Source: Macrostomum lignano (lineage: Eukaryota). From it: a DNA stretch of 64,000 bases. Every line of letters begins with the position of its first letter. The first letter of the stretch is position 1. Of the stretch, positions 21,786-51,100 are shown one piece after another. Both the position numbers and the translations under genes were made by a program. The notes beneath the pieces are model-generated. The model searched no databases. It was not told where the DNA came from and worked only from the letters and a program-made list of their open reading frames with translations. Where the stretch lies: positions 9,100 through 73,099 of the forward strand of contig NIVC01003865.1 in the NCBI GenBank assembly GCA_002269645.1. The letters are read 5' to 3'.

Positions 21786-21895
21786 AGAGAAGTCAGAATA
21801 GTATCTTAAAAAGTCTACCGTAGTTTGTATTAATATTAACGTGCGCACTGATTTTGTTTTATTTTTTTATCACGAAAACTTTTTAAGCGCCGGAC

Positions 21896-22247
21896 GGGTC
21901 TCCCTAAAACACGCACCGCACCGCCCCGAACCGCTACACATTATAACATTTTTGTCAATGCAGTATTTAATTGTAAAGAAAACTATTTGTTGTACGAGTG
22001 ATGGAATAAATATCTTTATTTATTATTATAAATATCTTTAATTATTATTATAAATATTGTTATTATTTTTTATATTATTGTTTTCATTTTTATTCACGGA
22101 ATTTTATATTTCATAGTAAAAAAACTTAATTTAATAAAAACTTTGAAGCTTAACAGAAAACGCATTTTGAAGTGTCTTCAGTTATAGTCCAATTTGTTTT
22201 AATGTGTAGCGCTGCAGGGCGGTGCGGGGCGTGTTTTAGGGAGACCC
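21896..22247. mobile_element. MULE-like MITE, ~47-bp TIRs, 9-bp TSD
   Basis: GGGTCTCCCTAAAACACGC...GCTACACATT and its inverse at 22201-22247; TSD GCGCCGGAC at 21887-21895 and 22248-22256. Confidence 0.85.
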
Positions 22248-24621
22248 GCGCCGGACAAACGATAACTGGACCTAATGGTTATTACAGTATTAAATATACT
22301 TAAATAAATCTGCATCTCAATTGTCAAGTCTTCAAAAATAAAGTGCTTACACAAGTTTATCGGATGATCTCTCTCAATTGGACTATTTTTTATTTGCTTT
22401 GAAACATCTCAACTAGAAATGAATATATGGTGTTAATTACTGAATCACTGAATTACTGAATAATTACTGAACTGAACAAAAATGATAGTATCAAAGTTGT
22501 TAGTTATAACAAATGGTGTTAATTAAACTGAAAAATATTTTTTTCTTTAGATTTTCGGTACTTGATTATTGCTAATTAGCCATAAATGAATAAAATGCTA
22601 TTGCTTGTCCAGATATACTCAGAGTATCCAAAATAGATAATGAATATTTTATGGTATTTTAAATTTAAATCAATGAACCAGACAGTAATTTTAGACATTT
22701 TATTTATAATATTGTTAAAGAAGTGTTAAGTCTAACCAAACACAATCTTCTCTTATCTTAAATATTAAAAAAATTGTCTATGGACTATGGTGAGAACTTG
22801 CTTGGCATAACTTTGGTTTTTCACTTTAAATTATTTTCTAGATATTTTCAAACTTTTATAATATAATAAGATTTAAACAAAGTAAAGTCACAGAATAAAA
22901 AAGTCAATAAGTCCCATAGTGTTGTATTCCAAAGCAGGAAAGTGAAACAGGTTGCTAAGTTGCCTATCTGTAAATTCCAGAAAATAACCCAGAATGCCAA
23001 GGAATAATAATGCTAGAAAATACCAGAAAATAATATTTAAAGTGAGAGATCAAAGTTATGCTAATAAATTAAGATATTGTAATCAATACTTTCTTCATTT
23101 TTTACTATTATTATAGTTTAGTTTATACTTTTAAAATAATTTATAATTATCTACTAGAAAGAATGCCTAACTAGAGTATTCATTATATTATATACTAGAC
23201 AATTATTTGAGTTTCATAATAAAAAACAAAAATTATAATTTTGTGACAGGCCTTTTGGCTCTGTCTTTCTAAACTCTTAACTATTGATGCTAGTGTTTAT
23301 TAAATATCCTACGAGCTGCCACCAAAGTTGTAACAGGCTAATTATCTTCTACTTTATCAATTTTAATAATCCTACTAAATGCCACCAAGTTGTACAGGTG
23401 TTGTTCCTGTCTGCTAACTAGTTATCTTAATTGCACTTCTATTTTCACTCCTTAACTGTTTCTTAGAATTTCATTTGAATATACTGGTAGCGTTTTATGT
23501 ATTAGTCTGGTAGCGTCTTATGTATTAGTCTGGTAGTGTCTTATGTATGGCCTGAGCAGTCTAGTACTGGTACATGAACTTATCAGATTGTCCTAGTTGG
23601 GCATTCACTAGGATTAGAGGGTCATAGCACAACTCTCGAATTTCCTTTGTATATCTCCCAATCCCTTCTCTTAGCAATTTTCTGAGCACTGTTACTCCCT
23701 CTTTCCTTAAAATAACTAACTCAATAAGATTTCAAAGTTAATCTGAAAATATAGAATGAACCAATGTTATAGCGCACAAATATTTCAAGAGCAAGAAAAT
23801 GTTACTTTTATTTGGGCAAAATTCACTCATATATATACTGTTTAGATAGCTATGTTTATAACAAAAATTATATGTCAATAATATTTTGCATAGTAAAACA
23901 AAACAGTGAGTTTATTTCTTGTTTGTGCGCAAATTCAATGTGACTATTATTAAACTATTTTTACTTGTATAAATTGCGATAATATAACAGCACTATCATT
24001 GTAGATGTTCATTAGGCACATAGAAATACTAAAAACTTATAGGAAGTACAGGCTAGCACAATTTATTAGGCTAATCTAGTAGCAAAACTAGAAATTTTTG
24101 AGAGGGGGCATATTATAAAGGTAAAGACCTAAGGGAGAGGAGCAGAACACCAGAAGAGATGGCTTTGTATTTTGGCAAAAATTATTTTGGTCCTCCCTTT
24201 GATTTTTTTCTGGTCTTTACTTAAGGGAAAAGTGACTGCCTTCCTACCTCTCCTTTAGTTGCTCCACTGGGCTAATCAATTTGTTGTTTGCTATTGATAA
24301 CTTTAGTGTCTAAGGAGTATCTTATAATTAAAGTTTATAGTAGAAGCTAATATTGTAATATTACTTATTTTATACACTTTTGTTGCTACACTTTATATAT
24401 GAGTCATGATAATAAAAATGACTGCCAGTTGATAGACAGCTACAGGTTTTTTTGCCAATAGTCTTTAATTTCTAAGTTTTAAGTTTACTGATTCTATTTT
24501 TAAGCAGAAAGCTATAGGATAAGAATTATTTTATGCTTTAGTGCATAGACTGCCAACAAGGTCAATGACAAGGTAGTAGAAGATTAGTTATTCCCATTTA
24601 TCCCATATTATCCCACTAGGG

Positions 24622-25248: not shown

Positions 25249-28200
25249 ATGCTGCCAGTAACATTTCGCTACCGCCGCTATCTTGGCTGGCGCAAGCACT
25301 GGCTATATGGTTTGTTATTAGCGGCATTTATATTTGCAATTGTCTACCTGCTACATGGCGGCGGCTATCGGGACAGGCTGGCAAACCAAAGGGATTGGCC
25401 AACTGTTCAAGCTGCTTTGTCTGCAACACCATGGGAGCTGCCGGACAATGACCAGCTGGTGCTGTCAGGCCCCGGCAGTCGGCACTATCCAGCAACTTTG
25501 AATGCGTCCAAGTCTGGCGTTGCAGAACTGCTGCAGAATCCCATGAAACTCGATGAGCTGCGCTCCAATGTCAGGAAGACGCTCAGCTATCTGAGCCACT
25601 TGGCTAAGCCGTCCGAATTTGATGCCAACGCTGGCAGCTGCATGTGTGGCCGAATTGCCGAGCCGTGCAACTGCTGCGCCAGGCTCACGGCCGGCCGGCT
25701 TCGGCTCGGACAGACTGCCTGCGTGCAGTTCGCCTATCTGGTGCATCGGCAGGCCATGAGAACCCGGCTGTTGCTGGCCGGGTCCATACTGGTATGGGGA
25801 CTGGCTGCTTCTGTGCTGCATCTCGGGGAGAACTGGGTAGCTTAGTCTGAGGATAGGCCTGGAGAATCGGGTAGCTTAGTCTGAGGATAGGCCAGGAGAA
25901 TCGGGTAGCTTAGTCTGAGAATAGGCCTGGAGAATCGGGTAGCTTAGTCTGAGGATAGGCCAGGAGAATCGGGTAGCTTAGTCTGAGGATAGGCCAGGAG
26001 AATCGGGTAGCTTAGTCTGAGGATAGGCCAGGAGAATCGGGTAGCTTAGTCTGAGAATAGGCCAGGAGAATCGGGTAGCTTAGTCTGAGGATAGGCCTGG
26101 AGAATCGGGTAGCTTAGTCTGAGGATAGGCCAGGAGAATCGGGTAGCTTAGTCTGAGAATAGGCCAGGAGAATCGGGTAGCTTAGTCTGAGGATAGGCCT
26201 GGAGAATCGGGTAGCTTAGTCTGAGGATAGGCCAGGAGAATCGGGTAGCTTAGTCTGAGGATAGGCCAGGAGAATCGGGTAGCTTAGTCTGAGGATAGGC
26301 CTGGAGAATCGGGTAGCTTAGTCTGAGGATAGGCCAGGAGAATCGGGTAGCTTGACTTACTTCTTGACTTAGCTGCAGGGTGGTCCGTAGACACAGCGGG
26401 GAGGCGAGGGTCGCCCATTCCGCTAGCCCCTGAAGGCCCGCAGACAGGCAGAGGCGTGGGGCCGGTCAGGGTGGTCCGCCGGTCCGTCCTGCAGCGTGAT
26501 CTTCCGTTGGGAAGAAACTGGCTCGTCTAGTCGCCCGAAGGAACTGGATGAGCCGTGGGATGCTGTCGGGCTGGCAAACCTCGTCAATGGACGGGTTCGG
26601 CCCGAGGTAGCGTAGCCGGTCTCTGTTAAAGAAAGGGCAGTGACAGACAAAGTGCTGAGCATCTTCATTGTCGCACTCGCAAAAGGGGCAAATTTCGCTC
26701 TCGAGGTCGCCTCGGAGGAAGCAGTGCCTGGCGAGGTAGCCATGGCCGGTAAGGGTCATGACAAGGGCTCGAATATCCTTCCGATTCTGGTTCAGAAGGA
26801 TGTTTCTGAGCCTGTGAGACGGGCAAGGAACCGCGGCACGAGATTGCCGGCAGTTTTGGGTGCCCGCCCATCTGTCCCTGTGGAGGGAGTCAGCCCAGTC
26901 GTCGATCTGACGATTGATGACTGTCAAGGGCATAGGGACCAGGGGGCAGGGCCGAAAAAAGAGCCAGAGCCGCCCCTCTTGGCGAGGGTGTCTGCCAGCT
27001 CGTTCCCCGGAAACCCTGCGTGCCCTGGGATCCACTTCAGCCTGACAGTATTGCTTCTGGCCAGGAGGTTGAGCTGCCGGGCGCAGTCGGCGACTGTCCG
27101 GGAGTTCGTTGTGGTGTGGCAAAGGGCCTGTAAGGCCGCTTGGCTGTCGGAGTGGATGACAATAGTCTTTCCTCTCGTAACCTTGGCGTTCAGCTCTGCA
27201 GCGCAAGAGCTGATGGCAAGGACTTCGTTCTGGAAGACTGTGGAGAGTCTACCAGTGTGCTGGGCATGCGTGGCAATTACGCGGCCGTTGATGATGATGC
27301 AGACCCCAAAGCCGGCGCGACCGTCTTTGATGGATCCGTCCGTGTAGCAATGGACCTCCTGGAAATTCCAGTGGTCATTGGCAGCATCCCTAGAGGGGAT
27401 GGTGACCTTGTAGCGCTGAAAGAGGTTGAGAGTGCGGGGTTCGCCGTCAGATAGGACGTGGAGCCCGCCGCTGTCTCTCAAGTCCTTGAGGCAGAGGTCA
27501 GCGTGGGGCAGAAGCTTGCGCTTAGCCATGGCCCTATGGGGCTGGATTCGAATGCCAGCGTCAGCTAGACGGCGGGCAGTCTTAGCCGCTTCCCTGCGGA
27601 CAAAGATGTCCAGCGGAGGAATGTTGAGGAAGGCGTTGAGGCCATCGTAAGGAGCAGACGGAGGGGCGCTCATGATCGTGCGACAAGCGCGCCCTTGCGC
27701 TCTCCTGAGAGCCTCTAGACAGGTCTTTATCTGCAGGGCGCTAGCCCAGATCAGGCCGCCATACGAGATAGCGGGCCTAACCATTGCAGTGTAGATCCAC
27801 CAGAGGCGCTTGGGGTGAGCCCCCAGGTGGTGCCGACAGCCCTGCGCAATTGCGCGAGGACTGCGAAGGCCTTTTTGGCTTTTGTTTGAACGTGGGGAGA
27901 CCAGTTCAGCCTGTGGTCCAGGGTAATACCCAGACATTTAGTCTGCTTGCAGAAGGGGATTTCCCTTCCGTAAAGCGTGAGCGGCCGAATCTGCCACTTG
28001 GTCCTGCTGGTGAACATGATCGCTGCGGTCTTAGTCTCAGAGAGCCTTAAACCACAGCGGTCCGCCCATTGCTCAGCAGCGTAGATGAAGTTCTGAAGAA
28101 GGTCCCTGAGGGTATCAGGGGACGGACCAGATGCCACCGCGGTGACATCGTCCGCATATCCAACTTTCAGAATGGGGTCAGGCCGAACATCCCGGAGGAG

Positions 28201-31200
28201 CTCATCGATGACCATATTCCAGAGAACTGGAGACAGCACCCCACCTTGCGGGCTACCTTTGCAGACGGGGACCGTCCTCTGGTAGCCCAGCAGACTGGCG
28301 GTGGCCGTGCGATGGCTGATCATGTACATGATCCATCTGGTGAGATGTGAGTGCGTTAGCCTCTCACAAAGAGCTCTTCGGAACGCCTCAAAGAGGACGT
28401 TATCGAAGGCGCCAATGATGTCCAGGAAGATCCCCAGAGCAAAGCCACTACCAAGCACGGCCTTCTCGAGTTTATCGACCAGGACGTGCAGCGCGCTTTC
28501 AGTGGAGCGACCCGCCCGAAAAGCGTGCTGGTTCTCGCTGAGAGGTTTGTTCTTCAGCTCAACAGAGAGAAGGCGCCAAAGCACCAGTCTCTCCATCAGC
28601 TTGACCAGGGAGGAGGTCAAGCTGATCGGTCTGAAGGATTTGATAGAATGGTAGTCCGGGCGGCCTGGCTTAGGGATAAAGATCACCTTTGCCTCGGTCC
28701 ATGCCTGCGGGACATAACCAAGCGTGATGCATGCCCGAAGAAGGCTGCAAAGTTTGCGCAGGAAGCCTGGGCATTTAACCGCCTCTCTTAGAAGGGCCGG
28801 TACAATGCCGTCGGGTCCTGGGGCTTTGAAAGGCTTGAAGGAATTTGCCGCTCTCACAATGCGGTCCTCCGTGATGATAGATGCAGCCAGCGCGTGACCT
28901 CCCTCCGAGTGATCCGGAGTGGTCTGGTTAGCTGGCTCGTTAGGGAAAAACGCAGTGAGCATTACATCAAGCGTTTCCCCTGGGTTGTCCGTGGACGTAC
29001 CGTCGGTGCGTTTGACCGAGGAGAGCTTAGACATTTTGTCCAGCGTGAGCGCTTTCACAACTCTGGAGGTGGGGCGTGAGCCCTCTAGCTCCTCACAGTA
29101 TTGTCGCCATTTTTGAGCCTTTGCATTCCTAACCTGCCTTTTAAACTCATGAATTGCTTCATGATAGGCGGTTTGGTCTGCAGGGCTCTTAGTTTTAGTT
29201 GCTCTGCGGTGGAGTCTCTTAGCCCTGCGACGGAGGTTGCCGAGCTCGGGATTCCACCACGGCGCCGATTTTTTCCCTTTATAGGCTTTTAAAGGGCAGG
29301 ACGCCTCAAAGGCGGCGGTTAGCGTCTCTGTCAAAACAGTCGCGCACTCATCCGCCTCTCGGCACGACGTGATCGTGGATGGTTGGCCAGGAGACCGATG
29401 GAATTCCTTCAGGGCGAGCCCGAAGGTTTCCCAATCCGTATTTCTGGCGTTCCGTCTCCACATAACACGAGTTGCGCTACGCGCGGCCATTAGGTTGAAG
29501 GAGATGAACTTGTGATCCGATAGTGAGGACACTGGAAGCACCCGCCACGCCCCAATACTCTGGTAGAGTCTGGGCGTTGCGAGCGTAGCGTCGATCACCT
29601 CCGACCACCGTCCGTTGTCAAAGGTAGGGGTGGACCCAGAGTTGCAGAACTCGAGGGTCGTAGAGGCAACGTAGGCTAGGAGGTCTTCGCCTCTCTGATT
29701 AATGCCAGTGCTGCCCCAGTGAGTGTGGTGGGCGTTGATGTCGCCGGAAACCATGAGCTCGTAGTTTTTGGCAGAGCAGAGCTCTACCAGCGTAGCGAGG
29801 GCTCTGGGGACGACCGCAGCATCGCCTGGTAGGTAAACCGAGGCAATGAGGGTGGTCTTCCCAGGAAGAAGGTCCTCGGATTGGATGACGCAGATGTCCC
29901 TGTTGGACAGGTCCGATCTGAGCCACGCACTGAGCGTTTTGCTCGCAAAGATGCAAGCTCTGGGAGGCTGGTTGGCCTCGCGAGGGTAAGTATAAAAACA
30001 ATTGTAGCCAGCAGGGGCGTTTTGAGGCTTACCTCTGAGAGTCCAGGGTTCCTGGACGAGGATGAGCCCCGGCTTGTCGAGCTCGGCGTAACGCATAAGG
30101 TTGACCGAGGCTGCGACGCAGTGCTGCAGATTAATCTGCAGGCAATGGATTCCCTGGTTGCTGATCATTATCACGCAGTTGGGGAATCGTTGAGCAGGTC
30201 ATCCTCCTCCTTTTCAGTGGTGGGTGACCCGCAGACCTCCATGGGAGTTTCAGCGTCCTCAGCAGTTAGGGTGGCTGTGGAGTCCTCCGCGGACGTGAGC
30301 CCAGCGTGGACGTTACCGTCGCCTCTCCTGCGTGCTTCGGTGCTGTCACTGCCCGTCCCCTCTGCCTCGTCGGTCAGGTCGATGCGGGTGTCGCCAGCCT
30401 CCTGGTGAGTCACAGACTCGAACCAGTCGGTCGGAGCCTCCCCGCTTAGAGTCTGGCCTTCTGGCTGTTGGGGTGGAGCGCGAGAAGCGCGGGCCCGCTC
30501 ACGATGCGCACGAAGGTTCTTGGCCTGGTCCAGCGCGCGCTGGATCAGGCCGGACCTCCGGGTGCTCCTGGCGGGTCTGCGATTGCGATTTCCGGTTTCA
30601 GCAGCGCGAACTGCCTTACCGGGCATAGGATCGGCCGTTTGCCTCGGCTTCTTTGCCGGAGGAGCCTGGGCCCCAGTTCCGGTTTCGGAAGCTTTGGCAT
30701 TCTTGGCTTCATCAGCTTTCCGCTCCTCGCAACGGAGGATGGTCAGCTGAGTCAGACCAATATGAATTGTGGACTTAGGCGGCAAGCGCTTAGCCCAGTC
30801 ATCAGAGAGCCCTAGGATCACCGTAGCCCCCTTCTCCTTGCGGGAAGTGGCGTGGTGTAGGAGCCCGTTGACCTTAAGGTCGGGGTGCAGCTTTAGCAAT
30901 ATTTGCCTAAGCTGATCTCCGGACTTAATGGCACTGCCGGCCGGGATCCAGACGCGAAAGCGCTGGGTCTTCTGTCGTTCGCCCTCGCTGGCGAAGACGA
31001 GCTTGCCGAGCTTCTTGGGCCAGTTCAGCTTTGGCAGAAGCTCGCGTAGATTGCGGCTGCTCTCCTCCGAGCTGCACCAGATGAAGATGCAGCCGTCGGT
31101 CTTGGCAGACTTGACCACGCTCACAGGGCGGCCCGCCAGGAGCTGGTCGATGAGCGCAGCATCGATGGTGCGCCAGGCACTGTCGAGCTCGTCGGCCGTG

Positions 31201-32996
31201 AGGTCCTGCTCTTCCCCGAAGACGATGACCGCCGGTTGGAGCTTGACCTTTGAGGCGTAGTTGGTGGCGGCGGTTCCCGAAGGCCCGGCCGCGCTTGTAG
31301 CAGGTATACTGGGTGGCTCACCAGCGGGGGTTGTATCCTGGGGGGCAGGGGTTGCTGTGGTTCCTTTCGGCCCAACAGCAGCCTCGCCCTCCCTAGGTTC
31401 CCCTCCGCCGGTGGCCGGCCCGCAGTACCCCGTAGTCGCCGTCGCCGCTCGTTGCGGCGTTGGTTGCGGGTGCGTCGGGCTTCAGCGGAGGGCCCGGTTG
31501 CGCGTGCGGGCATGTCACCAGCCGAGCCGGCGGCAAGCCCATCTGCCCCCGGTGGGGCGGCGCTGGTGCCAGAGTCACCGGCCGGAGTTGCCGGGGCCCC
31601 GGCTTCAGCGGGGGTTAAAGAGGCGGATGACGCCATAGCTGAAAGCGGGAAGGAGTGAGCTGAGTCACAAAAGAAAGAGGAAAGAAGAAAAAGAAAAGGA
31701 CCGCTAGCGACCGGACAACCCCCCGGCCTTCCAGCCCATCGGCACGGTCAAACACCTTAGGCATTAGGGGGTACGTTAAGCAGTACCACGGCCTGCAGGC
31801 TGGCAAGCCAGACCCGCATACCCAAATTCGGCCGAAGCCACTGGATGGGTCGCCAGCGTCGGAGCCCAGTCTGTCCAGCAGCCCTAGGGTCTGCCTTGAA
31901 CACACGCGGGGACGAGTACCCTGGGTCGACTTGTGAAACAGCGTGAGGGGGGGGTCTGCGGCTGCCAGCGGCAAATAGCGGGTGCAGACCTCCCTCTCCA
32001 GCCTTGACCTGCTGAAGATAGGGGCAGGCGTGAAGCATCGCAGACCGTAGCCCTTAGGCCTGGTCTGTCTCATACTTCACTGGCGTGCTGAATACACCTT
32101 CGCGTGCAATCGGGTAGCTTAGTCTGAGAATAGGCCAGGAGAATCGGGTAGCTTAGTCTGAGGATAGGCCAGGAGAATCGGGTAGCTTAGTCTGAGGATA
32201 GGCCAGGTTGGTAGATTGAGCACACCTGGTAGATTTGAACACAGGTTGGTAGATTTGAACACAGGCTGGTAGATTTGAACACAGGCTGGTAGATTTGAAC
32301 ACAGGCTGGTAGATTTGAACACAGGTTGGTAGATTTGAACACAGGCTGGTAGATTTGAACACAGGCTGGTAGATTTGAACACAGGCTGGTAGATTTGAAC
32401 ACAGGTTGGTAGATTTGAACACAGGCTGGTAGATTTGAACACAGGCTGGTAGATTTGAACACAGGCTGGTAGATTTGAACACAGGCTGGTAGATTTGAAC
32501 ACAGGCTGGTAGATTTGAACACAGGCTGGTAGATTTGAACACAGGCTGGTAGATTTGAACACAGGCTGGTAGATTTGAACACAGGCTGGTAGATTTGAAC
32601 ACAGGTTGGTAGATTTGAACACAGGTTGGTAGACTTAAACACCCGCCGTCCGCGCAGGTGGATAAGCTGCTGTCCGCCGCCAGCATGCCGTCGGCGCTGT
32701 GCGCAGGCGAGCACCAGCCCCGCCTGGAACTGTGCGCCAGATTTCGCAACGCATCCTACACTGTGCAGATTCACTCCAGGCACAAGACTAGGCTATCTGG
32801 TTGTATTGAACTATTAGTTAATCTGGCGAATATAACTATTTATGCTTATCCGTTGGGCTGTTTCAACGCCCAGGGTCCCAGCGACTCAGCTGCGGAGTCG
32901 GCGGCTGAAAGCGGCAGGAGCGCCAACGCCAAGGTCGGACGGCCCAAACACGCGGCCGCTGGCCACAATTTGCACATGGACAATTGGGTGCCTTGA
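25249..32996 (+). CDS. DUF4773-domain protein with an N-terminal membrane anchor; exons 25249-25791 and 32658-32996 (293 aa)
   Basis: Exon 1 has a hydrophobic segment (HWLYGLLLAAFIFAIVYLL) and CMCG..PCNCCA...QTACVQFAYL. Exon 2 has LCARFRN...LSGCIELLVNL...YPLGCF. The Cys pattern is that of DUF4773; the GT-AG intron is phase 0. Confidence 0.8.
25828..26353. repeat. 34-bp minisatellite (GAGAATCGGGTAGCTTAGTCTGAGGATAGGCC(A/T)G)n, left part; resumes at 32108-32205 after the LINE
   Basis: Direct reading. Confidence 0.96.
26466..30168 (-). CDS. LINE ORF2: APE endonuclease, reverse transcriptase, RNase H and C-terminal Cys/His motif; two -1 frameshifts (~27810, ~26945)
   Basis: LQINLQHC/QEPW/GDINAHH/SDHK (APE); KAPGPDG, FRPISL, QHAFR, FLDIIGAFD, GSPQGGVLSP, YADD (RT); YTDGS, FQNEVLAI, SDSQAAL, WIPGHAGFPGNELADTLAK (RNase H); CPFC..EDAQHFVCHC. 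Confidence 0.95.
30171..31636 (-). CDS. LINE ORF1 (DUF4780-like), with one frameshift between ~31480 and ~31300
   Basis: ATG at 31636; basic RRTRNQRRNERRRR segment; then, in another frame, YASKVK...DGCIFIWC...RFRVWIP...LHPDLKV...GATVILGL...IHIGLTQL, resembling LOA-clade ORF1. Confidence 0.75.
32206..32640. repeat. 20-bp minisatellite (GGTAGATTTGAACACAGG(C/T)T)n ending ~15 nt before the acceptor
   Basis: Direct reading. Confidence 0.96.
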
Positions 32997-33631: not shown

Positions 33632-34768
33632 CACCCTCTGAAATGGCAGCCTCTCAAATGAAATGGCAGCCCCTCAAATGAAATGGCAGCCCCTCAAATG
33701 AAATAGCAACCCCTCAAATGAAATGGCAGCCCCTCAAATGAAATGGCAGCCCCTCAAATGAAATGGCAGCCCCTCAAATGAAATAGCACCCCTCAAATGA
33801 AATAGCACCCCTCAAATGAAATAGCACCCCTCAAATGAAATGGCACCCCTCAAATGAAATGGCAGCCCCTCAAATGAAATAGCACCCCTCAAATGAAATA
33901 GCACCCCTCAAATGAAATAGCACCCCTCAAATGAAATAGCACCCCTCAAATGAAATGGCAGCCCCTCAAATGAAATAGCAGCCCCTCAAATGAAATGGCA
34001 GCCCCTCAAATGAAATAGCACCCCTCAAATGAAATGGCAGCCCCTCAAATGAAATAGCAGCCCCTCAAATGAAATGGCAGCCCCTCAAATGAAATAGCAC
34101 CCCTCAAATGAAATGGCAGCCCCTCAAATGAAATAGCAGCCCCTCAAATGAAATGACAGCCCCTCAAATGAAATGGCAGCCCCTCAAATGAAATGGCAGC
34201 CCCTCAAATGAAATGGCAGCCCCTCAAATGAAATAGCAGCCCCTCAAATGAAATGGCAGCCCCTCAAATGAAATGGCAGCCCCTCAAATGAAATAGCAGC
34301 CCCTCAAATGAAATGGCAGCCCCTCAAATGAAATAGCAGCCCCTCAAATGAAATGGCAGCCTCTCAAATGAAATGGCAGCCCCTCAAATGAAATGGCAGC
34401 CCCTCAAATGAAATGGCAGCCCCTCAAATGAAATGGCAGCCTCTCAAATGAAATGGCAGCCCCTCAAATGAAATGGCAGCCCCTCAAATGAAATAGCAAC
34501 CCCTCAAATGAAATGGCACCCCTCAAATGAAGTGGCACCCCTCAAATGAAGTGGCACCCCTCAAATGAAATGACAGCCCCTCAAATGAAATGGCAGCCCC
34601 TCAAATGAAATGACAGCCCCTCAAATGAAATGGCAGCCCCTCAAATGAAATGGCAGCCCCTCAAATGAAATGACAGCCCCTCAAATGAAATGGCAGCCCC
34701 TCAAATGAAATGACAGCCCCTCAAATGAAATGGCACCCCTCAGATGAAATGGCACCCCTCAAATGGAG
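33632..34768. repeat. 19-20 bp minisatellite (CCCCTCAAATGAAAT(G/A)GCA[G])n, intergenic
   Basis: Direct reading. Confidence 0.97.
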
Positions 34769-36062: not shown

Positions 36063-39000
36063 TCACACGGAGAACTGCCGCTTAGCCTGCAGCCGGAAGA
36101 CTCCGTAATCAGACAGGTGCAACTCGCTACTGGGCGTCACCATTAGCAGCCGCCGCAGCAGCGCCAGCTGGTCAGCCGCGGTCTGGCCCGCTCGGTAGAC
36201 GGCCAGCAGCCTGGGATCGTAGGAGATCGGCCCTCCTGCCAGCTGATTGGCTCGGCGAACCTCCGACTGGCATTGGCAGACTCGACAAGCGCGGATGGTG
36301 TACCGACAGGTCCTGTTGGTTTTTTGCGGCCGGTTTCGGGTGGGGCCCTTTATTGCAGAGCATTCAACTGCATACGGCTATGTAACTGAAACCTTAGTGA
36401 CACCTTACACTTGGTGCAGTCTTGTGCATCAGTCTTTTTCAAACTCTTGTAGATTTATTACAACCTTGCTCATTCATTGCAGCATCTCTGCTTTTTATTG
36501 AATTATTTAATGACACATTGTAACCTTCTTACACATGTTGCAACCTTCTTACACACGATGTAACTTTCTTACACATGATGCAACCTTCTTACACATAATG
36601 TAACCTTCTTACACACGATGTAACCTTCTTACACATAATGTAACCTTACACATGATGCAACCTTCTTACACATGATGCAACATTCTTACACATGATGCAA
36701 CATTCTTACACATGATGCAACCTTCTTCTTACACATGATGCAACCTTCTTACACATGATGCAACCTTTTTAGACATGATGCTTTTTATTGAATTATTTAA
36801 TGACACATTGTAACCTTCTTACACATGTTGCAACCTTCTTACACACGATGTAACTTTCTTACACATGATGCAACCTTCTTACATATAATGTAATCTTCTT
36901 ACACACGATGTAACCTTACACATAATGTAACCTTACACATGATGTTACCTTCTTACACATGATGCAACCTTTTTACACATGATGCAACATTCTTACACAT
37001 GATGCAACCTTCTTCTTATACATGATGCAACCTTCTTCTTACACATAATGCAACCTTCTTACACATGATGCAACCTTCTTCTTACACATGATGCAACCTT
37101 TTTTAGACATGATGCAACATGCAACCTTCTTAGACACAATGCAACCTCATTAAAGGCATTTTGTATCCTTTCTCACACGTTGAAATTTTGCTCTTACATC
37201 GAACGTCTTCAACATACTCTGGAGTCAACCCTTCCCAAGTGAGCACCGCCAAAGCTGACCTGTGGTACAGACTGTCGCAGCCGTGGCAGTGCACAGCCAC
37301 CTGGCTGTACTTGTACACCAGTCGCCGAGTGTCCAGACAGACTGGACACACGCGCGGTGTGCAGCTCAGACAAGCGGCCCTGTGATTGGCTGCGCACTGG
37401 GCGATTCTGATTGGCTGGCTGGTCAGCTGAGCCCAGCGGCCCTGTGCCATGGCCAGCAGCTCGCCGGGCGTGAACTCGCTGACCCTGTCGGCGCTGTCGA
37501 CAGCATCATCGTCGACTGTGGGCTGGGCAAAGTACATGTAGTGCATGGAGCCCGGCACCTGGGATGAGGTGTGGTGTACATGGTTTTGGATTTAATTAGG
37601 GATGCTAAAATTAGTGACTTAATGCGAGCATATCTGGGTTTGGACTACATTAGATTTTCAAAGTTTAGACTTTACAACGCTTCAAATCAATTAATAAAAA
37701 TTAGGTACTAGGATGTGGTACAAGCAAGGTTAAAAAGCATAAATTAATTTATCCTAAAATCATAAAAATCATATTCCAATATACTTAAATTGATTTGTCT
37801 CTATTGTTTAATCTAAAAATTCAGAATTACCCCCAAAACGAAAAATCCTAGTGAAATCAAAAAATACAATTTGTGGGTTAAGTATTATTTCTAATTTAAG
37901 TTCCTACTATTGTATTCCAAAATTCTGATTAAATCCAAAATACCTAATATTTTCAAGCATCTATCGAGGGGTGTCTAAAAAGTAGTGATACTTTTAACTG
38001 TAGCTCTCGTTCTATAGCTTCCTGCGATTTAAAATTTGAACTGATAGATAGAACTGAACTGAATGAACTGATAGTGAAAAATCTCTTCTACAGACTGCTT
38101 TTTGAATTTTTAAAATTGATTCCAGAGAACAAAAGTTATACCCATGAAAGTAACAGTATATGTACCATAAAGTTACACAAATTATAGGCTGAGCTTTATG
38201 AGACCCATGCCGAGTAAGCTTCGATGAATTGTTGATTTCGGCTTGTCCAACCTGTCAGCGATCTCTCTAATGGTCATTCGGGAGTCCTCGTCAAGAAGAT
38301 TCAGAATGGAGTCCGCCAGTACATCAGGTCGATGAACGTATGGCCGCCCCGTCCGATGCTGATCTGCCAAATCAGTCCTTCCCTCGCTAAACTGCTCCAT
38401 CCATCGATAAACTGTCATTTTGCTGACCGCAGAGGATCCGTGCGCAGAGCAAAGTTTTGCGTGAATTGCTGAGTCACTTTGACCAGCGCCCCAAAGAGTG
38501 AAGATGGTACTTTGCTGAGCAACAACTGAGTGCACAGCCATGTGTGTTGTCGAGTATGGGCAATGAAATCAATTGCAAAATGCAAGCTCCTCTGTTTGCA
38601 AGTAAAGTAATGAATTTAATGCTTTATTTTTCTGCGCATGATTCTGTCCATAGACAAATTTCAGTCAGTCACAGTGAGCATCATTTTGCAATTGAGCTTT
38701 GGTATTGCTTAAGCAAGACATTTATCGATGCCTTCTTAATGAATGAGTGCAGAAGTCGACTAGTATAAATTTCGATATAGTTTGTGTAGCTCTATGGTAC
38801 AGGGACTGTTACTTTCGTGGGTATAACTTTTGTTCTCTGGAATCAATTTTAAAAATTCAAAAAGCAGTCTGTAGAATAGATTTCCCGCTATATTAGTTCA
38901 TACAATTTTAAATCACATGCAGCTATAGAACGAGAGCTACGGTTAAAAGTATCACTACTTTTTGGACACCCTCGTAACTTTTCATTTCACGAGCTAAAGT

Positions 39001-42000
39001 CGATTGGCTGCGACATGTCGGGAGCACGAGAATTTCCCGCGACATTTTTCCCGCCGAGGTTTGCCCGCAAATGTTTTTTCCTGCAGCGCATTTGGCCAGC
39101 TAGAAGATTCTGTCTGCATTGCCACCCGCCAATGCTTAGTATTGCGTAAGTCTTAATAAAGAGATTTATGGAAGAAAGCGACATTGCATAGGCTTGAATT
39201 AATATTTGCTCACCGATGTACCCCTGCGTGTATAGAGCATTGCGGGCAAACCTCAGCGAGAAAAAATACTCGGCGGGCAATTCTCATGGACCCGTACATG
39301 TCTGAGGATCAGAAAGTCAGGACCGCTGTACACCCTGGGTGAGCGTGTGTATGAGTGCGTGCCAGCGTACAGTATTGGCACGCTCGAATGTGCTCAGGAG
39401 CATGTTTGGGCCCAACCTAGGGATTCACCCGGCCGTTTCTATAGGCAACACACACATGTAAGTCGCTATTGGACGGAATAGTAGTCACGTGACTGCTCTC
39501 AGCCAATAGCGACTTACATGTGTGTGTTGCCAATAGAAACGGCCGAGTGATTCCCAAGGTTGCGCATGTATGCAGTCAAGAGTCGGTGGATCATGGGCAG
39601 AATTGCCGCAGCGCTGGTTGAGCGGGACGATGTCGCCGAAGACGTTGCGCCAGGGTATCTGCAGGCCCTCTCGTAAAATTAAAATTGTAATTCTTGTCCC
39701 AATCTGCACTTGAAACATTCCAAGCCAGTCTGAGCTCCGCAATTTTTTCCCATTTCCCTTCCCCGAGACTCGCCTCATCCGCCAGACGGTCCCGCATGTC
39801 CGGGCACAGCCAGCTCGCCAGCAGCGACTGTCGGGCCCTGACCCGAGCGTCAATCACATCGCCGAGCTTCAGTAGGAACGGCGCCTTCGTCCAGGCGGCC
39901 AAATCGGGGTCGCCGCGGTCGCCGAGTCGCAGCGCCAGGCGGTCCTGGGAGGCGCGCAGCAGGCCGAGGGCGCGTCGGCAGACGGGGACCGGGGTGCAGT
40001 CGCCCGAGGCCAGCAGTCTCGATGGCAGCACGGCCCGATCGTTCCAATGGCAGAGCGAGCAGCAGCGCTGGCCGTAGTAGTGGCAGTAGCGAGCGGCACC
40101 GCTGTATGACGTCATCTCGGCGCCGCACTGGCCGCAGTGAGTTGCGCCCCGGATCTTCGATGCCCAGCTGCTGGACAGAAGCCGCTGGAACACGGGATGC
40201 GTGCGACTTTCTTTCAAATATATTTGCACCTGGCAAAGTCCTTTGATCCCACGAATCCCAATATGGACTATGGAGTACAATTCTGATCCCATAATGCACG
40301 GACCCGACCATTCTCCTCGGCATTTATCCTCAATAAATAATTATCTGGTGATCGGCTCGCAATGATCAGACTAGTATTCCCCATGATAATCTAATCCGTC
40401 CTCATCGGGTGCAGGTCGTTTCGGTGAGTCAGTTCGATCGGTGACAGTCAGTTCGATCGGTGACAGTCAGTTCGATCGGTGACAGTCAGTTCGATCGGTG
40501 ACAGTCAGTTCGATCGGTGACAGTCAGTTCGATCGGTGACAGTCAGTTCGATCGGTGACAGTCAGTTCGATCGGTGACAGTCAGTTCGGTGACAAGTCAT
40601 TTCGGTGACAAGTCAGTTCGGTGACAGTCAGTTCGGTGACAGTCAGTTCGGTGACAGTCAGTTCGGTGACAGTCATTTCGGTGACAAGTCAGTTCGGTGA
40701 CAGTCAGTTCGGTGACAGTCAGTTCGGTGACAAGTCAGTTCGGTGACAGTCATTTCGGTGACAGTCATTTCGGTGACAGTCAGTTCGGTGACAGTCAGTT
40801 CGGTGACAAGTCAGTTCGGTAACAAGTCAGTTCGGTGACAAGTCAGTTCGGTGACAGTCAGTTCGGTGACAAGTCAGTTCGGTGACAAGTCAGTTCGGTG
40901 ACAAGTCATTTTGGTTACAAGTCAATTTGGTTACAAGTCAGTTCGGTGACAAGTCAGTTCGGTGACAAGTCAGTTCGGTGACAAATCAGTTCGGTGACAA
41001 GTCAGTTCGGTGACAAGTCAGTTCGGTGACAGTCAGTTCAGTGACAAGTCAGTTCGGTGACAAGTCATTTCGGTGACAAGTCATTTCGGTGACAAGTCAG
41101 TTCGGTGACAGTCAGTTCGGTGACAAGTCAGTTCGGTGACAAGTCAGTTCGGTGACAAGTCAGTTCGGTGACAAGTCAGTTCGGTGACAAGTCAGTTCGG
41201 TGACAAGTCAATTCGGTGACAAGTCAGTTCAGTGACAAGTCAGTTCGGTGACAGTCAGTTCGGTGACAGTCAGTTCGGTGACAGTCAGTTCGGTGACAAG
41301 TCAGTTCGGTGACAAGTCAGTTCGGTGACAAGTCAGTTCGGTGACAAGTCAGTTCAGTGACAAGTCAGTTCGGTGACAAGTCAGTTCGGTGACAAGTCAG
41401 TTCGGTGACAAGTCAGTTCGGTGACAAGTCAGTTCAGTGACAAGTCAGTTCAGTGACAAGTCAGTTCGGTGACAAGTCAGTTCGGTGACAAGTCAGTTCA
41501 GTGACAAGTCATTTTGGTTACGTTGCTCGTATTCTGTTTGCCATCGAACCAGCTGAAATCCTTTCTTCATCAGGACAAAAAGTCTGAGAACTTGTACGAG
41601 CTAACTAGGCCTTAGAAGCTTCATCCACTACCAGCAATAATAGCACAGATGGAGATGTAAGTGATGATAAAACGATAAAACAAATACATAGCTTACCGGC
41701 GGTCCCCAGTCCAGCTTGGCTTCTCCACTGTCCACCATCGCCACCGGGCAGCTGTGCACCCGGTTCTTACCGGCGCCAGAGGACGCACCCTGTTCCAGCA
41801 GGCAGGCCCGGTGAAGGCCCAGGCCGCACAGTCTGCACCGGTAGTGCTGAGGCCTGCCGCCTGCAGTGCCACCAGCAGCCCGGCCAGTGGCGGCCAGCAC
41901 CAGCCAGCTCTGCAGCGACAGCAGCCGCTTCGCGCACTGTTCGCACCGGTCGCTGCATGCGATTTCGGCAGAAGTACCGGCCGGTCTGTTGCTGGTGGTG

Positions 42001-42071
42001 GTGGTGGTTAGACTTAGCCGGCCTGCTGTCACCGGTTGAAGGCTGTGGCCGCGAAATACGAAGCAGGTCAT
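36063..42071 (-). CDS. DEF8: DEF8-like protein (C1 domain plus Rubicon-homology/zf-RING_9 domain); exons 42071-41697, 40229-39774, 39658-39518, 37522-37260, 36312-36063
   Basis: C1: GHSLQP...CEQCAKRL...YRCRLCGLGLHRAC...C. RH domain: CGQCG...RYCHYYGQRCCSLCHWNDRAVLPSRLL and CLSC..RVCPVC...CHGCDSLYHRTC....CRVC. Exon phases are consistent; the start codon and the middle exon boundaries are less certain. Confidence 0.8.
36515..37130. repeat. ~20-bp minisatellite (CAACCTTCTTACACATGATG)n containing a 290-bp block duplication
   Basis: Unique flank CTTTTTATTGAATTATTTAATGACACATTG occurs at 36491 and again at 36781. Confidence 0.93.
37965..38974 (-). mobile_element. Internally deleted mariner element with ~200-bp TIRs, retaining the N-terminal HTH ORF (38541-38182, 119 aa)
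   Basis: CGAGGGGTGTCTAAAAAGTAGTGATAC... versus ...GTATCACTACTTTTTGGACACCCTCG|TA. The ORF reads IHAKLCSAHG...VSKMTVYRWMEQFSEGR..L.DQHRTGRP...DSRMTIREIADRL..PKSTIHRSL (mariner bipartite HTH); no DD34D domain. Confidence 0.9.
39020..39293. mobile_element. MULE-like MITE with ~50-bp TIRs and a degenerate 9-bp TSD; related remnant at ~20349-20489
   Basis: GAGAATTTCCCGC...GAGGTTTGCCCGCAAATG is inverted at 39238-39285; flanks CGACATGTC / GTACATGTC. Confidence 0.65.
39294..39410 (+). mobile_element. Dispersed repeat, probable SINE, truncated copy 2
   Basis: GTACATGTCTGAGGATCAGAAAGTCAG... is shared with 61621 onward. Confidence 0.75.
39414..39561. mobile_element. 148-bp palindromic (foldback) element: 59-bp arms and a 30-bp spacer containing AGTCACGTGACT
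   Basis: AACCTAGGGATTCACCCGGCCGTTTCTATAGGCAACACACACATGTAAGTCGCTATTGG is inverted with about 4 mismatches; no clear TSD. Confidence 0.85.
40425..41520. repeat. 15/16/19-bp minisatellite (CAGTTCGGTGACA[A]GT)n, DEF8 intron
   Basis: Direct reading. Confidence 0.96.
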
Positions 42072-43098: not shown

Positions 43099-46000
43099 GG
43101 GGATGTCAACTTAAGCACCAGAATGGAGCCCGAAGTTCAGCTCCGGACCAAACCGACTGCAATCGATAACTTGTCGGCCTAGACGACTAGAATCGCCGAG
43201 ACATCCCATCCGGCTCCCTTCCTTGGGGTCCCAGGGGATAAAGGGGATAAAATGGGGATCTCATGTCAACTTAAGCACCAGAATGGAGCCCGAAGTTCAG
43301 CTCCGGACCAAACCGACTGCAATCGATAACTTGTCGGCCTAGACGACTAGAATCGCCGAGACATCCCATCCGGCTCCCTTCCTTGGGGTCCCAGGGGATA
43401 AAGGGGATAAAATGGGGATCTCATGTCAACTTAAGGCTCTGGAATGGAGCCCGAAGTTCAGCTGCGGACCAAACCGACTGCAATCGATAACTTGTCGGCC
43501 TAGACGACTAGAATCGCCGAGACATCCCATCCGGCTCCCTTCCTTGGGGTCCCAGGGGATAAAGGGGATAAAATGGGGATCTCATGTCAACTTAAGCACC
43601 AGAATGGAGCCCGAAGTTCAGCTCCGGACCAAACCGACTGCAATCGATAACTTGTCGGCCTAGACGACTAGAATCGCCGAGACATCCCATCCGGCTCCCT
43701 TCCTTGGGGTCCCAGGGGATAAAGGGGATAAAATGGGGATCTCATGTCAACTTAAGGCTCTGGAATGGAGCCCGAAGTTCAGCTGCGGACCAAACCGACT
43801 GCAATCGATAACTTGTCGGCCCAGACGACTAGAATCGCCGAGACATCCCATCCGGCTCCCTTCCTTGGGGTCCCAGGGGATAAAGGGGATAAAATGGGGA
43901 TCTCATGTCAACTTAAGGCTCTGGAATGGAGCCCGAAGTTCAGCTCCGGACCAAACCGACTGCAATCGATAACTTGTCGGCCCAGACGACTAGAATCGCC
44001 GAGACATCCCATCCGGCTCCCTTCCTTGGGGTCCCAGGGGATAAAGGGGATAAAATGGGGATCTCATGTCAACTTAAGGCTCTGGAATGGAGCCCGAAGT
44101 TCAGCTGCGGACCAAACCGACTGCAATCGATAACTTGTCGGCCCAGACGACTAGAATCGCCGAGACATCCCATCCGGCTCCCTTCCTTGGGGTCCCAGGG
44201 GATAAAGGGGATAAAATGGGGATCTCATGTCAACTTAAGCACCAGAATGGAGCCCGAAGTTCAGCTCCGGACCAAACCGACTGCAATCGATAACTTGTCG
44301 GCCTAGACGACTAGAATCGCCGAGACATCCCATCCGGCTCCCTTCCTTGGGGTCCCAGGGGATAAAGGGGATAAAATGGGGATCTCATGTCAACTTAAGG
44401 CTCTGGAATGGAGCCCGAAGTTCAGCTGCGGACCAAACCGACTGCAATCGATAACTTGTCGGCCTAGACGACTAGAATCGCCGAGACATCCCATCCGGCT
44501 CCCTTCCTTGGGGTCCCAGGGGATAAAGGGGATAAAATGGGGATCTCATGTCAACTTAAGCACCAGAATGGAGCCCGAAGTTCAGCTCCGGACCAAACCG
44601 ACTGCAATCGATAACTTGTCGGCCTAGACGACTAGAATCGCCGAGACATCCCATCCGGCTCCCTTCCTTGGGGTCCCAGGGGATAAAGGGGATAAAATGG
44701 GGATCTCATGTCAACTTAAGGCTCTGGAATGGAGCCCGAAGTTCAGCTGCGGACCAAACCGACTGCAATCGATAACTTGTCGGCCCAGACGACTAGAATC
44801 GCCGAGACATCCCATCCGGCTCCCTTCCTTGGGGTCCCAGGGGATAAAGGGGATAAAATGGGGATCTCATGTCAACTTAAGGCTCTGGAATGGAGCCCGA
44901 AGTTCAGCTCCGGACCAAACCGACTGCAATCGATAACTTGTCGGCCCAGACGACTAGAATCGCCGAGACATCCCATCCGGCTCCCTTCCTTGGGGTCCCA
45001 GGGGATAAAGGGGATAAAATGGGGATCTCATGTCAACTTAAGGCTCTGGAATGGAGCCCGAAGTTCAGCTGCGGACCAAACCGACTGCAATCGATAACTT
45101 GTCGGCCCAGACGACTAGAATCGCCGAGACATCCCATCCGGCTCCCTTCCTTGGGGTCCCAGGGGATAAAGGGGATAAAATGGGGATCTCATGTCAACTT
45201 AAGGCTCTGGAATGGAGCCCGAAGTTCAGCTGCGGACCAAACCGACTGCAATCGATAACTTGTCGGCCCAGACGACTAGAATCGCAGAGACATCCGCTGT
45301 GCCACTATGTTCCGCTATGTGCTGCTTTGCTGCCATTAAGCAGGACTAATATGTTAACGAGAGGTACAAACCGTATCAGTGGCTGCCGTCAGCCGGCTTC
45401 AGTGAGCCCAGCCGATTAGACGTTGTTATCGAGACCTCGATGGCAAAGTACAACCGGGCGCATCCAGGTTTTGAATCATTTAAACAGCTTCCACCGTCAT
45501 GGACAGGGCTATTGTTGTTCGAATTCGGTCAGAATTTCATGCGCCGAGTGTTCTTGTCCAACGAACTGGACGAAATTGAGCAGCTGCACTTCAACTGTGA
45601 TCTGAAGCGTGTTCCCCTGCTAACACAAGGGCATGGATTGCTGTCAACCCGCTGGATCCAAAAAGCTCGGGGTTCCCCCAATTCACACAGAGAATTTGTC
45701 AGAGGTTTCGGTGGGTCCGTATCAACTAAATCAAGCCGATGATTACATTCAAAACATTCGTGTCAAGGAGGTTCTCGGTAGCTACGAAGGTGACTCCTGG
45801 AGAGACTTTGAGTCGCTCACATCCGAACTTCCGAGCCACCTGAAGTGTTGGAAGTTTCGGCAAGAGACGCCGCTAGAAAACTGGAGCAACCTATTCGGTC
45901 GGTGGCATCCGTCTTGATTTTTCTAGCTGTCGTTTTCTCGCGCCATACTCGTAATTCGAAATCCTACCGCGTGATTCTTAGAGTGTGTGACAGCAGCAGA

Positions 46001-48179: not shown

Positions 48180-51100
48180 ATGGATCTCTTAAAACAAGAA
48201 ATACTACAACGCAAAAGAAAGCTCGAGGAGCTTAAAGTTCTGGTAAGATATATTTATTTTCTTTTTTAAATGTAATGTTTGTATTTCTATTTTAATCAAT
48301 ATCTCAGCTTGCATCGCTGCCAAATTTTGTTTCAAAGTCATGCACAACAGTGCTGCTAGGGACTCAGGGATCCTCTGATATAGACATAATACCTTTTGTT
48401 GCTTTTTGTAAGCCTAACTCTATCTCTACTCTATGGAACAACATAGTCAGACCAAATAAGTAAGCACCACTTCTTGATAAATTAAAGGGTAAAAAATGCA
48501 CAAAAGTTTGTTAATAAATGAAAGATCAGATCTTCCACTTTTTAACAACTAAATTTTTTAATTCTTTTTTTACTAAATTAATTTTTTTACTAAGAGCCAT
48601 ATTGCGGATTGTGTTACATGTATGCCAGAAAGTATTTGGCTATCTAGTAAAGTGTATGCTAGTAAATTAAACCAATTAATTGTTCTAGTAAATTGTATGC
48701 CACTAAAAATTGTGTGATTAACAAGCACATAACCAATCAAACAAGCATTAAATGGCAAATAATAATTGTGCTGCAGAAAAACAAAATGTACATCATTTAA
48801 AAATGGAAATAATTAGTAAAACAAAAAAGTATACTTTTTATTAGTAACTATGGAAAAGCTAATTATATTATTTTTAAAAATAATTTATTGTCAATAAATT
48901 TAAAATTAACCTTATTACTGCATACAATTGTTTAGCGTAATTTATGCAATTATGACACATATTTCAATGCTTTTGTATACTGTGCCATAAGCTTCAACAA
49001 ATGTAGTTTAGAATTGTACGCCAATGATTGTGCCAGAAAGTTGTCTTTCCTCTTTGCATTTGTACGCCAGATATACACCAGTTAAAAGCATTTATTCTGG
49101 CATATACTATACATTTCGCAATATGGACTAAGAGTAACACTTAATCTTAAAGTGTGGCTGCAATTATATATGTAAGTACTGAAAAATAAATAACTTTTTT
49201 GATATACATTGGCTATACTTTGTCATAAGTTAAACATTAGCCTTACTAAAGCCAGGGGTATGGAAGCAGCAAGCCCTCCACTAGCTTTACTAAAGCCAGT
49301 GACATTTGTAGTGACATTCCCTACTTAACAAGGCAACAAATAAACTAAATATAGTCCAATAAGTTTCTTAGTTATTAATATTTAGGATAAATACAAAAAT
49401 ACATAAACAATATTTAACACAATACCCATTGTCCCATGTTGAAGACAATAAAGAAGGCTAGTGGGGGGACTAGCCACCCCTATACTCCTGGCTTTAGTAT
49501 GGCTAGTGGGGAGGCTTGCCACCCCTATACCCTTGGCTTTGTAAGGCTATATAATGTTAACTCATAACAAAGCGTAGCTAGTATATATCAAAAAAATTAT
49601 TTCTTTTTCAGTAGCTACATATATAATTGCAGCTGCACTTTAAGATTTAGTGTTTCTCTTAAAAATTTATTTAAATTTTTTTTAATTTAAAATAAAAAAA
49701 CTGCAACAACTTGGAATTTTAAACTTTTTACGCAATCACAAGGCAATTAACATATCCACAAAGCCACAATTTACTTATGAGAGATCCCTACAGAACACAC
49801 ACATTTTATATAAATGATTATATACATGGCAGCTATGCCTATAAGCTCCAATATTATAAACAGGGATACCCACCATGTCTCTAAATGTGAATCCATTCAA
49901 TATTAACAAGTTTCATTGACATGGCAGCTACATCTCTAATAGTGACTAGGTCCATACTTATAGACATATCCCTAGTCACTATTAAAGACATGGCCACTGT
50001 CTATAAGTTTCTGCATTATAGACACAGCCACTGTGTCTCTAAGTCTAGTGTAAAAATCTATACTATAGGTGAAAATAGAGATACTGCACTTACTGCTTGT
50101 TGCATTAGTTGTGTGCTTTTTAATCACGCAATATTTAGTGGCATACAATTTACTAGAATACTTGATTTGTATAATTTATTGGCACACATTGTATTAAATA
50201 GCCAAATACTTTCCAGCGTACATGTACCATATCTATAATACGGGACAAAGTGACTATTTAGCAAGGGTAGTGGTATTTGCTATTGACGAAGTGACCAGGT
50301 TTAGAGGTTTTACTGATTGGTCAGTTGACAAAATGACCAAGATCAATGGCTTACCACTTACCAGTTGTCAAAATGAAACAAATTTAGAATTACATTTACT
50401 CAATTGCAAATGCACTAAGCATTATTTCAAAAGTCTTCATATGTAAATTTTAATGTTAATATTTACTAACAAATTGTTTAGCTATTTTTTTATTTCCTTT
50501 AATTTCTTTAAAAAATACCATTTCCTTTGCTGTAATTTATTGTAATTCAAGTATAAATTCAAATGTATGTATGTATTAGTGCAATTTGAAATTAATTAAT
50601 AGCTGTTTCACTGCAGTGGTTCATTCATGATGTGAGAGTAAGAGTTGATTTAATAGAACAATTCTTGGCATAGATACAGCCATGAACATATCATATGTAC
50701 AAGTGTACACAATACTGCATTGCATAATATATGTATATGTACAGTTGACAAATGCACAGTTGACAAAGTGACCACCATTTTAAAGTGTTGCAATTGTCAA
50801 TTGATGAAGTGGCCACTTTTTGAGATTCACTGATTGGCCAGTTGATGAAGTGACCTGAGAGCAATGGCTCCCCAGTTGACGAAATGCCAGTTGACAATTT
50901 GACTAGGATCCTTTTGATATAGGGCCTAGCCCAAAGGCAAGATTTAGAACAAGTCAAGAGTCGAGTACTTGTGCAAGTGTTATGGCCCATAAATGAAGGG
51001 AAAGAATTAGGGATAGTTGTGCTCTAAGGGAAAGGAAAAGAGATTAGAGGCATAACAATTGAGCATTAAGAATCAAGTTAATAAAATATAAATTTTGGGA

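Follow-up and report, generated by a model that had tools for sequence, protein, structure and literature searches.

A palindrome carrying a splice-donor motif in a DEF8-like gene is most likely the body of a small DNA transposon

Can a palindrome supply the splice donor of a coding exon and at the same time fold over it? This question is raised by a DEF8-like gene on the minus strand of a 64,000-nucleotide stretch of contig NIVC01003865.1 (positions 9,100 to 73,099; hereafter the window, numbered from its first letter). The segment from 39658 to 39518 had been read as a coding exon that ends at a CAT/GTAAGT donor inside a palindrome (a slash marks a splice junction). We find that this palindrome is the core of a 174-bp insertion with a target-site duplication (TSD), most likely an ordinary transposon insertion, and that the putative exon is built from repeats. 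Our preferred reading, which we consider probable, is that a small non-autonomous DNA transposon lies in a repeat inside a long intron and is removed with this intron, its GTAAGT being incidental.

The inverted repeat spans 156 bp (39410-39565), with arms of 63 nt that are 92% complementary and contain 5 mismatches. It had been described as a 148-bp palindrome with 59-bp arms; the palindrome is real, but its arms reach 4 nt further on each side. It consists of the following parts.

39410-39472: palindrome arm 1, which reads CATGTAAGT on the plus strand at 39455-39463
39473-39502: palindrome spacer of 30 nt, itself an imperfect palindrome with the centre GTCACGTGAC (39484-39493)
39503-39565: palindrome arm 2, which carries CAT/GTAAGT on the minus strand at 39520-39512, the donor of the original prediction

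The sequence CATGTAAGT has exactly two sites in the 64 kb, one per strand and both within the palindrome. A consensus donor is thus present on both strands, as had been claimed, because the palindrome is symmetrical. RNA folding of the 201 nt around the palindrome yields -124.2 kcal/mol, compared with -54.2 +/- 4.4 kcal/mol for dinucleotide shuffles (z = -15.8; 0 of 200 shuffles were equally good). No known structured RNA family, such as a microRNA precursor, was recognized: Rfam returned only generic microRNA-hairpin matches, the best of which (32.6 bits) lies far under the gathering score of 70.

The sequence that surrounds the palindrome bears on its origin. A BLAST search of the intron against the window identified a dispersed repeat, here called R, that is at least 190 bp long and is present in three copies, of which only the copy at 39 kb is interrupted. 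The insertion, its flanks and the three copies of R are arranged as follows.

39401-39574: inserted element of 174 bp, resembling a miniature inverted-repeat transposable element (MITE) or foldback element, missing from both other R copies
39393-39400, plus strand: left copy of the TSD, CTCAGGAG
39575-39582, plus strand: right copy of the TSD, GTCAAGAG
39294-39400, plus strand: left part of R, which adjoins the palindromic insertion and matches 61638-61744 at 89.7% and 17532-17644 (opposite strand) at 85%
39583-39655, plus strand: right part of R, which on the minus strand forms codons 1-26 of the putative exon
61638-61830, plus strand: uninterrupted copy of R (empty site)
17497-17644, minus strand: second uninterrupted copy of R (empty site)

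Both uninterrupted copies read CTCAGCAG once at the insertion point, and when 39401-39582 is deleted the interrupted copy becomes colinear with both empty copies (61.6 kb and 17.5 kb) across the junction left by the deletion, gctcagGag/tcGgtgga. The right part of R aligns with 61745 to ~61830 and weakly matches 17497-17523. The flanking 8-mers CTCAGGAG and GTCAAGAG agree at 6 of 8 positions, for which our own estimate is p ~0.004 for an adjacent 8-mer, and the 8% divergence between the palindrome arms is comparable to that between the TSD copies. The view that the palindrome is a discrete element is thus borne out by two paralogous empty sites within the window and by an 8-bp TSD.

A 174-bp insertion with an 8-bp TSD around a palindrome behaves like a MITE or foldback DNA transposon, and the palindrome is most likely the body of a small non-autonomous element of this type. 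The likeness to such elements extends to its small size, its composition almost entirely of inverted repeat, its apparent nesting in an intronic repeat and the availability of empty paralogous sites for comparison. The element is also non-coding, as open reading frames (ORFs) within it are limited to 40-46-aa artefacts that run through the arms. At least four other inverted-repeat elements lie in the window (37969-38971, 39012-39302, 21895-22248 and 49129-49661), and foldback-type insertions are therefore commonplace here. Exact-pattern scans with a palindrome arm and with R against metagenome and prokaryote collections returned 0 matches; this genome would not be expected in such collections, and the scans are therefore uninformative on copy number.

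A TSD of 8 bp could point to the hAT superfamily. The target preference of hAT elements is nTnnnnAn, and in the target CTCAGCAG positions 2 and 7 are T and A, respectively. In contrast to hAT elements, however, the outer 9 nt of the insertion (CATGTTTGG and ATGTATGCA) are not inverted complements and are without the usual hAT terminal motif, and an autonomous partner was not identified, the search for a hAT transposase being confined to the window. Because the outermost 9 nt are not inverted complements, we do not assign the element to a superfamily.

The gene around the insertion extends over the minus strand from 42071 to ~37260 and contains three clear coding segments with strong preference for G or C at third codon positions (GC3). 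These segments, the disputed segment and the intron of the preferred model are listed in the order of the gene, with RH standing for Rubicon homology.

41697-42071, minus strand: exon A, C1-like zinc finger, donor CCG/GTAAGC
39774-40229, minus strand: exon B, N-terminal zinc-finger half of the RH domain, 152 codons, ending at GAG/GCGAGT in phase 0
37559-39773, minus strand: B-D intron of the preferred model, 2215 nt, holding R, the palindromic insertion, the 39012-39302 element and a mariner-like remnant
39518-39658, minus strand: putative exon C of the original prediction, 141 nt, 47 codons, open frame
37260-37558, minus strand: exon D, C-terminal half of the RH domain, acceptor cccag/GTGCCG, with a 3' end placed tentatively at CAG/GTCAGC

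The earlier identification of the gene as DEF8-like agrees with its predicted architecture, in which a C1 domain precedes an RH domain encoded by two exons; DEF8-like proteins have this order of domains. The spliced model matches Pfam RH_dom at E = 6e-17 and C1_1 at E = 7e-4, the latter under the Pfam cut-off. Exon B covers RH_dom profile positions 1-56 and scores 78 bits against an RH-domain profile that we built from 15 RH-domain proteins. The best relative is a Macrostomum lignano protein (UniRef A0A1I8HKG1; NCBI PAA63649/PAA68019) that has the same architecture. We thus call the host gene DEF8-like by its C1 and RH architecture, a designation under which orthology to vertebrate DEF8 is not established. 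The host gene is highly divergent: identity to the M. lignano protein is 49% and confined to the zinc-finger core, and the middle of the RH domain is missed by profiles. A phmmer search with the exon-B ORF against 1.84 billion representatives retrieved distant RH-domain proteins only (best E = 7e-9, zinc finger only), and a word-indexed protein search with the spliced model returned no match. The two deposited M. lignano protein models differ from each other, an internal acceptor, tcag/GACCTG, being used in one to skip LPEHRLHFLNNHNMYSYQ.

Whether 39658-39518 is an exon of this gene decides between the preferred reading and its strongest rival. According to this rival, which we regard as unlikely, the segment is a transposon-derived exon: R would provide the acceptor and 26 codons, the insertion would provide 19 codons and the GTAAGT, and the hairpin would tune the inclusion of a 141-nt cassette in some or all mRNAs of the gene. 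The frame in question begins at tgcag/ATACCC (39659/39658), runs through 47 codons (IPWRNVFGDIVPLNQRCGNSAHDPPTLDCIHAQPWESLGRFYWQHTH) and reaches CAT/GTAAGT at 39518/39517. It is in phase 0 at both ends and would be in frame with the end of exon B and with both exon-D acceptors, at 37522 and at the better-supported 37558. The original prediction held that no good in-phase donor precedes CAT/GTAAGT, and a listing of GT and GC dinucleotides downstream of the 39658 acceptor agrees: the other GTs are weak (AAC/GTCTTC, ATC/GTCCCG) or out of phase (GCC/GTTTCT). The frame as it was prior to the insertion lacked a consensus donor in phase, and the insertion could thus have created the exon. Splice sites donated by transposons are, moreover, well documented (PMC5395267, PMC12779559).

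The composition of the segment points the other way. Codons 1-26 are R, codons 26-28 a copy of the TSD and codons 29-47 inserted element; the earlier estimate of about 15 element-derived codons fits codons 33-47 (QPWES...HTH), which lie in the palindrome arm, while the whole insertion accounts for codons 29-47. At the position of a TGG in the 39-kb copy, the R copy at 61.7 kb carries TAG, and it differs from the 39-kb copy by net indels of 7, 2 and 1 nt. This stop codon and the frameshifting indels indicate that R is not coding sequence. The segment had also been described as strongly GC3-biased, which is true of its first 18 codons (17 of 18 end in G or C, a codon style like that of exons B and D) but not of the remaining 29, which show no bias. 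The GC3 signal of exon B stops at ~39780. Directly before the AG of the putative acceptor, the 14 nt GAGAGGGCCTGCAG are purine-rich, which likewise speaks against an exon here.

Two origins of the segment other than nested insertion were considered and rejected. An insertion into a pre-existing longer exon would leave a frame that lacks GC3 bias and a consensus in-phase donor and meets a TGA at ~39310. A tandem duplication relating exons C and D, whose peptides both contain VP..., finds no DNA similarity between them.

Comparison with related proteins provides further evidence against the exon. Our RH profile detects exons B and D and nothing in the exon-C frame, where Pfam likewise finds nothing. 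Pfam RH_dom gives 62.6 bits to the model that omits exon C and 61.0-61.4 bits when this exon is included; across four alternative splice models the scores vary by less than 2 bits, and the Pfam score thus cannot discriminate among them. The position of an intron in the M. lignano DEF8-like gene (locus L002) is more informative. This gene has a phase-0 intron at ...RRLGLAKL / LPEHRLHF..., with the splice sites CTG/GTGAGC ... cgcag/CTGCCG, and the equivalent point in the window is also in phase 0, between ...RDRLADE with GAG/GCGAGT at 39774/39773 and cccag/GTGCCG (VPGSMHYMYF...) at 37558. The M. lignano intron contains no small exon at the equivalent point, and the exon-C peptide has no counterpart there or in any of the aligned DEF8-like and other RH-domain proteins. 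Nor did the protein collections searched contain a transcript-derived protein with this peptide. The M. lignano intron (L002 11758-12544) consists almost wholly of a CT-rich, (CTCCCT)n-like microsatellite.

Direct joining of exons B and D would give a distance of 16 residues from the conserved Cys to the conserved His, compared with 17-18 in relatives, and would thus restore the spacing of the family. Exon C would add 47 residues to this distance, inside a conserved helical linker. Functional GC donors typically match the extended consensus apart from C at +2, and GAG/GCGAGT does so, making the B-D intron a candidate GC-AG intron. Given its construction from repeats, the missing counterpart in M. 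lignano, the missing profile match and the shared phase-0 boundary between exons B and D, 39658-39518 is unlikely to be a coding exon of the DEF8-like gene.

The second part of the original prediction concerned the hairpin, which was proposed to sequester the donor and to act as a possible splicing switch. We computed donor accessibility in a 401-nt context. Within CAU/GUAAGU the predicted unpaired probability is <=0.0014 per nucleotide, and opening of the donor 9-mer is predicted to cost 22.3 kcal/mol, compared with 5.4 kcal/mol for the region of the exon-B GC donor. The duplex of the U1 5' end with the GTAAGT donor is worth ~-5.2 kcal/mol. Burial of the donor is thus upheld by the model, and its expected consequence is inefficient use of the site or none, which counts against the exon as well; the switch, in contrast, does not follow, since the stem would act as a block.

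Known regulatory stems over 5' splice sites, such as those of MAPT exon 10 and terminal stem-loop 2 (TSL2) of SMN2 exon 7, are 6-10 bp long, marginally stable and tunable. The arrangement described here shares with them a donor motif inside a stem, but its predicted accessibility is close to zero, and the stem is 63 bp long and would require ~22 kcal/mol to open at the donor. Such a stem is, in this model, a block more than a tunable switch. The sole opportunity for U1 would be a brief interval during transcription, until the second arm, which lies 45-110 nt downstream, has been synthesized.

These observations are consistent with the following sequence of events. A MITE or foldback element would have inserted into an older repeat, R, that already lay within a long intron of the DEF8-like gene. 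The main mRNA most likely joins exon B (39774/39773) straight to exon D (37558), and R, the palindrome and the neighbouring transposon remnants would all be spliced out within a single 2.2-kb intron. The presence of GTAAGT in both arms would be a by-product of the sequence and symmetry of the element. In the pre-mRNA the arms would pair into a ~63-bp stem that hides the GTAAGT from the U1 small nuclear ribonucleoprotein, so that the motif would be at most a weak cryptic donor and the stem a generic intronic double-stranded RNA (dsRNA).

Several points weigh against this reading. The 141-nt segment contains no stop codon, would cause no frameshift and runs up to a perfect GTAAGT. The GC3 value of 17/18 in its first 18 codons is unexplained (hypergeometric p ~0.005, three phases), and such periodicity is found in only ~20 regions of the 64 kb, most of which are true coding segments; this unexplained signal keeps the exonization reading alive. 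The preferred model also requires a GC-AG intron, which belongs to a rare class, and other intron positions differ between the window gene and the M. lignano gene. BLASTP against M. lignano aligns the zinc-finger part only (49% identity), with no significant alignment at the junction, and homology of the junction thus rests on intron position, phase and spacing. Finally, the 174-bp element was found as one copy within the 64-kb window, which makes its membership of a MITE family putative.

A broader form of the exonization idea, in which the palindrome would belong to a transposon family with a donor in both arms and would promote structure-gated, orientation-independent exonization, with the 141-nt frame as one case, strikes us as quite improbable. 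Its new element, that the palindrome offers a donor in either orientation, follows trivially from symmetry, and the palindrome is a single copy in the window.

We likewise give little credence to the idea that the host gene is a decaying copy, a divergent paralogue in which the exon-B donor has changed from GT to GC and the intron has filled with transposons, so that its splice motifs would be without consequence. The divergence of the gene is strong (best E = 7e-9 on the zinc finger only, C1 under the Pfam threshold), its product was not found in the protein collections searched, and no Ku-domain gene was found in the window, unlike upstream of the M. lignano DEF8-like gene. Yet none of the exons A, B and D contains a stop codon, their GC3 bias is strong, the Cys/His pattern for zinc binding is retained in them, and the context of the GC donor is otherwise perfect.

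Very doubtful, too, is a micro-exon confined to the 54-nt GC3-rich segment from 39658 to ~39605, with a donor outside a purely intronic palindrome. Such an exon would fit the restriction of the GC3 bias to these 18 codons, and joining of CG/GCAATT (non-canonical, phase 1, ~39606) to cccacag/TC (37516) would keep the frame and give ...LNQRC-V-DDDAV.... The donor is, however, a poor match without G at +5, the join would delete VPGSMHYMYFAQPT, which aligns with the conserved (R)QHFV motif of the family, and the segment belongs to R and has no homology support.

DEF8 in vertebrates is a lysosome-positioning factor, and GTCACGTGAC equals the TFEB/MITF 'CLEAR' E-box consensus; it has 2 sites in 64 kb against ~0 expected. 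The second site shares with the palindrome centre a 13-mer, GCAGTCACGTGAC, that recurs once, at 56479-56491, in a promoter-like position ~140 bp upstream of where a minus-strand ORF (55705-56343) begins. That the element is a transposon-borne regulatory module acting at the DNA level, with GTCACGTGAC as its E-box centre and two ATTGG/CCAAT boxes per arm, nevertheless seems to us scarcely tenable, as the argument is one of motif resemblance and an E-box can be mimicked by any palindrome that has CG in its centre.

A comparison with characterized systems helps to place the locus. Alu exonization is a long-known case of transposon-borne splice sites. Maize Ds/Ds1 elements also bring splice sites and are exonized or spliced out (PMC5395267), and a speculative proposal holds that spliceosomal sites arose by evolution within the inverted repeats of Tc1 and other transposons (PMC12779559). 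The palindrome resembles these elements in that its consensus 5' splice site lies in frame with exons of the host, whereas use of the site has been shown by complementary DNA in those systems and the site described here is known from DNA sequence alone.

A second parallel is provided by SOS splicing, described in C. elegans and human cells, in which pairing of the inverted repeats causes DNA transposons located in exons to be excised from the mRNA, with AKAP17A, CAAP1 and RTCB as factors (PMC12779559). The palindrome would likewise form an RNA hairpin from transposon inverted repeats in a host transcript and, if exonic, would present the trigger structure. It differs in being most likely intronic, and two intronic Tc1 copies were reported not to be SOS-splicing substrates (PMC12779559). 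Intramolecular inverted repeats in introns, such as inverted Alu pairs, are a classical type of substrate for ADAR (PMC526178). The pre-mRNA is predicted to contain a long intramolecular duplex with few mismatches, similar to these and to other dsRNA substrates of ADAR or Dicer, although here it is formed by a single element and not by a pair as in inverted Alus.

The window contains a variety of other repeats. The element at 37969-38971, in the same B-D intron, is a mariner/Tc1-like remnant of ~1 kb with 218-bp inverted ends (82% identical); its 119-aa ORF (38182-38541, minus strand) matches HTH_32, HTH_23 and the Mos1-type HTH_48, and no catalytic domain is left. The elements at 39012-39302 (~290 bp), 21895-22248 and 49129-49661 are foldback- or MITE-like, have arms of ~60, 54 and 176 bp, and are unrelated to each other and to the palindrome. 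At 26924-31636 (minus strand) lies a near-intact retrotransposon without long terminal repeats (non-LTR), with an ORF1-like segment, endonuclease, reverse transcriptase and RNase H; it has one frame change near 27750-27940, and its best named relatives are from M. lignano (63-73% identity). Together with the best match of the DEF8-like protein, these relatives point to a macrostomid-like flatworm as the source of the window.

Minisatellites with 16-34-bp units are very dense in the window, which also holds a 161-bp tandem repeat, and several of them lie in introns of the DEF8-like gene (examples in the window are 1-669, 2876-5224, 11605-14812, 33639-34765, 40418-41515, 43103-45295 and 58111-59458). 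The R copy at 61.6 kb directly adjoins a minisatellite of 16-mers (61103-61650), the unit of which is similar to the beginning of R. A 198-aa ORF at 25249-25845 (plus strand) has a weak match to DUF4773 (E = 8e-5, under the Pfam cut-off) and could represent another host gene nearby.

If the preferred reading is true, the locus is unremarkable, being a further example of a small DNA transposon that sits within a repeat in an intron. It would then serve as a caution that an open, in-frame, GC3-rich stretch ending at a perfect GTAAGT can arise by chance from repeats. If the cassette were used after all, it would be a clean natural exon made from two nested transposons, with its donor in a 63-bp stem. 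Such an exon would be informative about the control that RNA structure exerts over the birth of new exons and about the splice sites that DNA transposons have recently been suggested to carry in their inverted repeats (PMC12779559).

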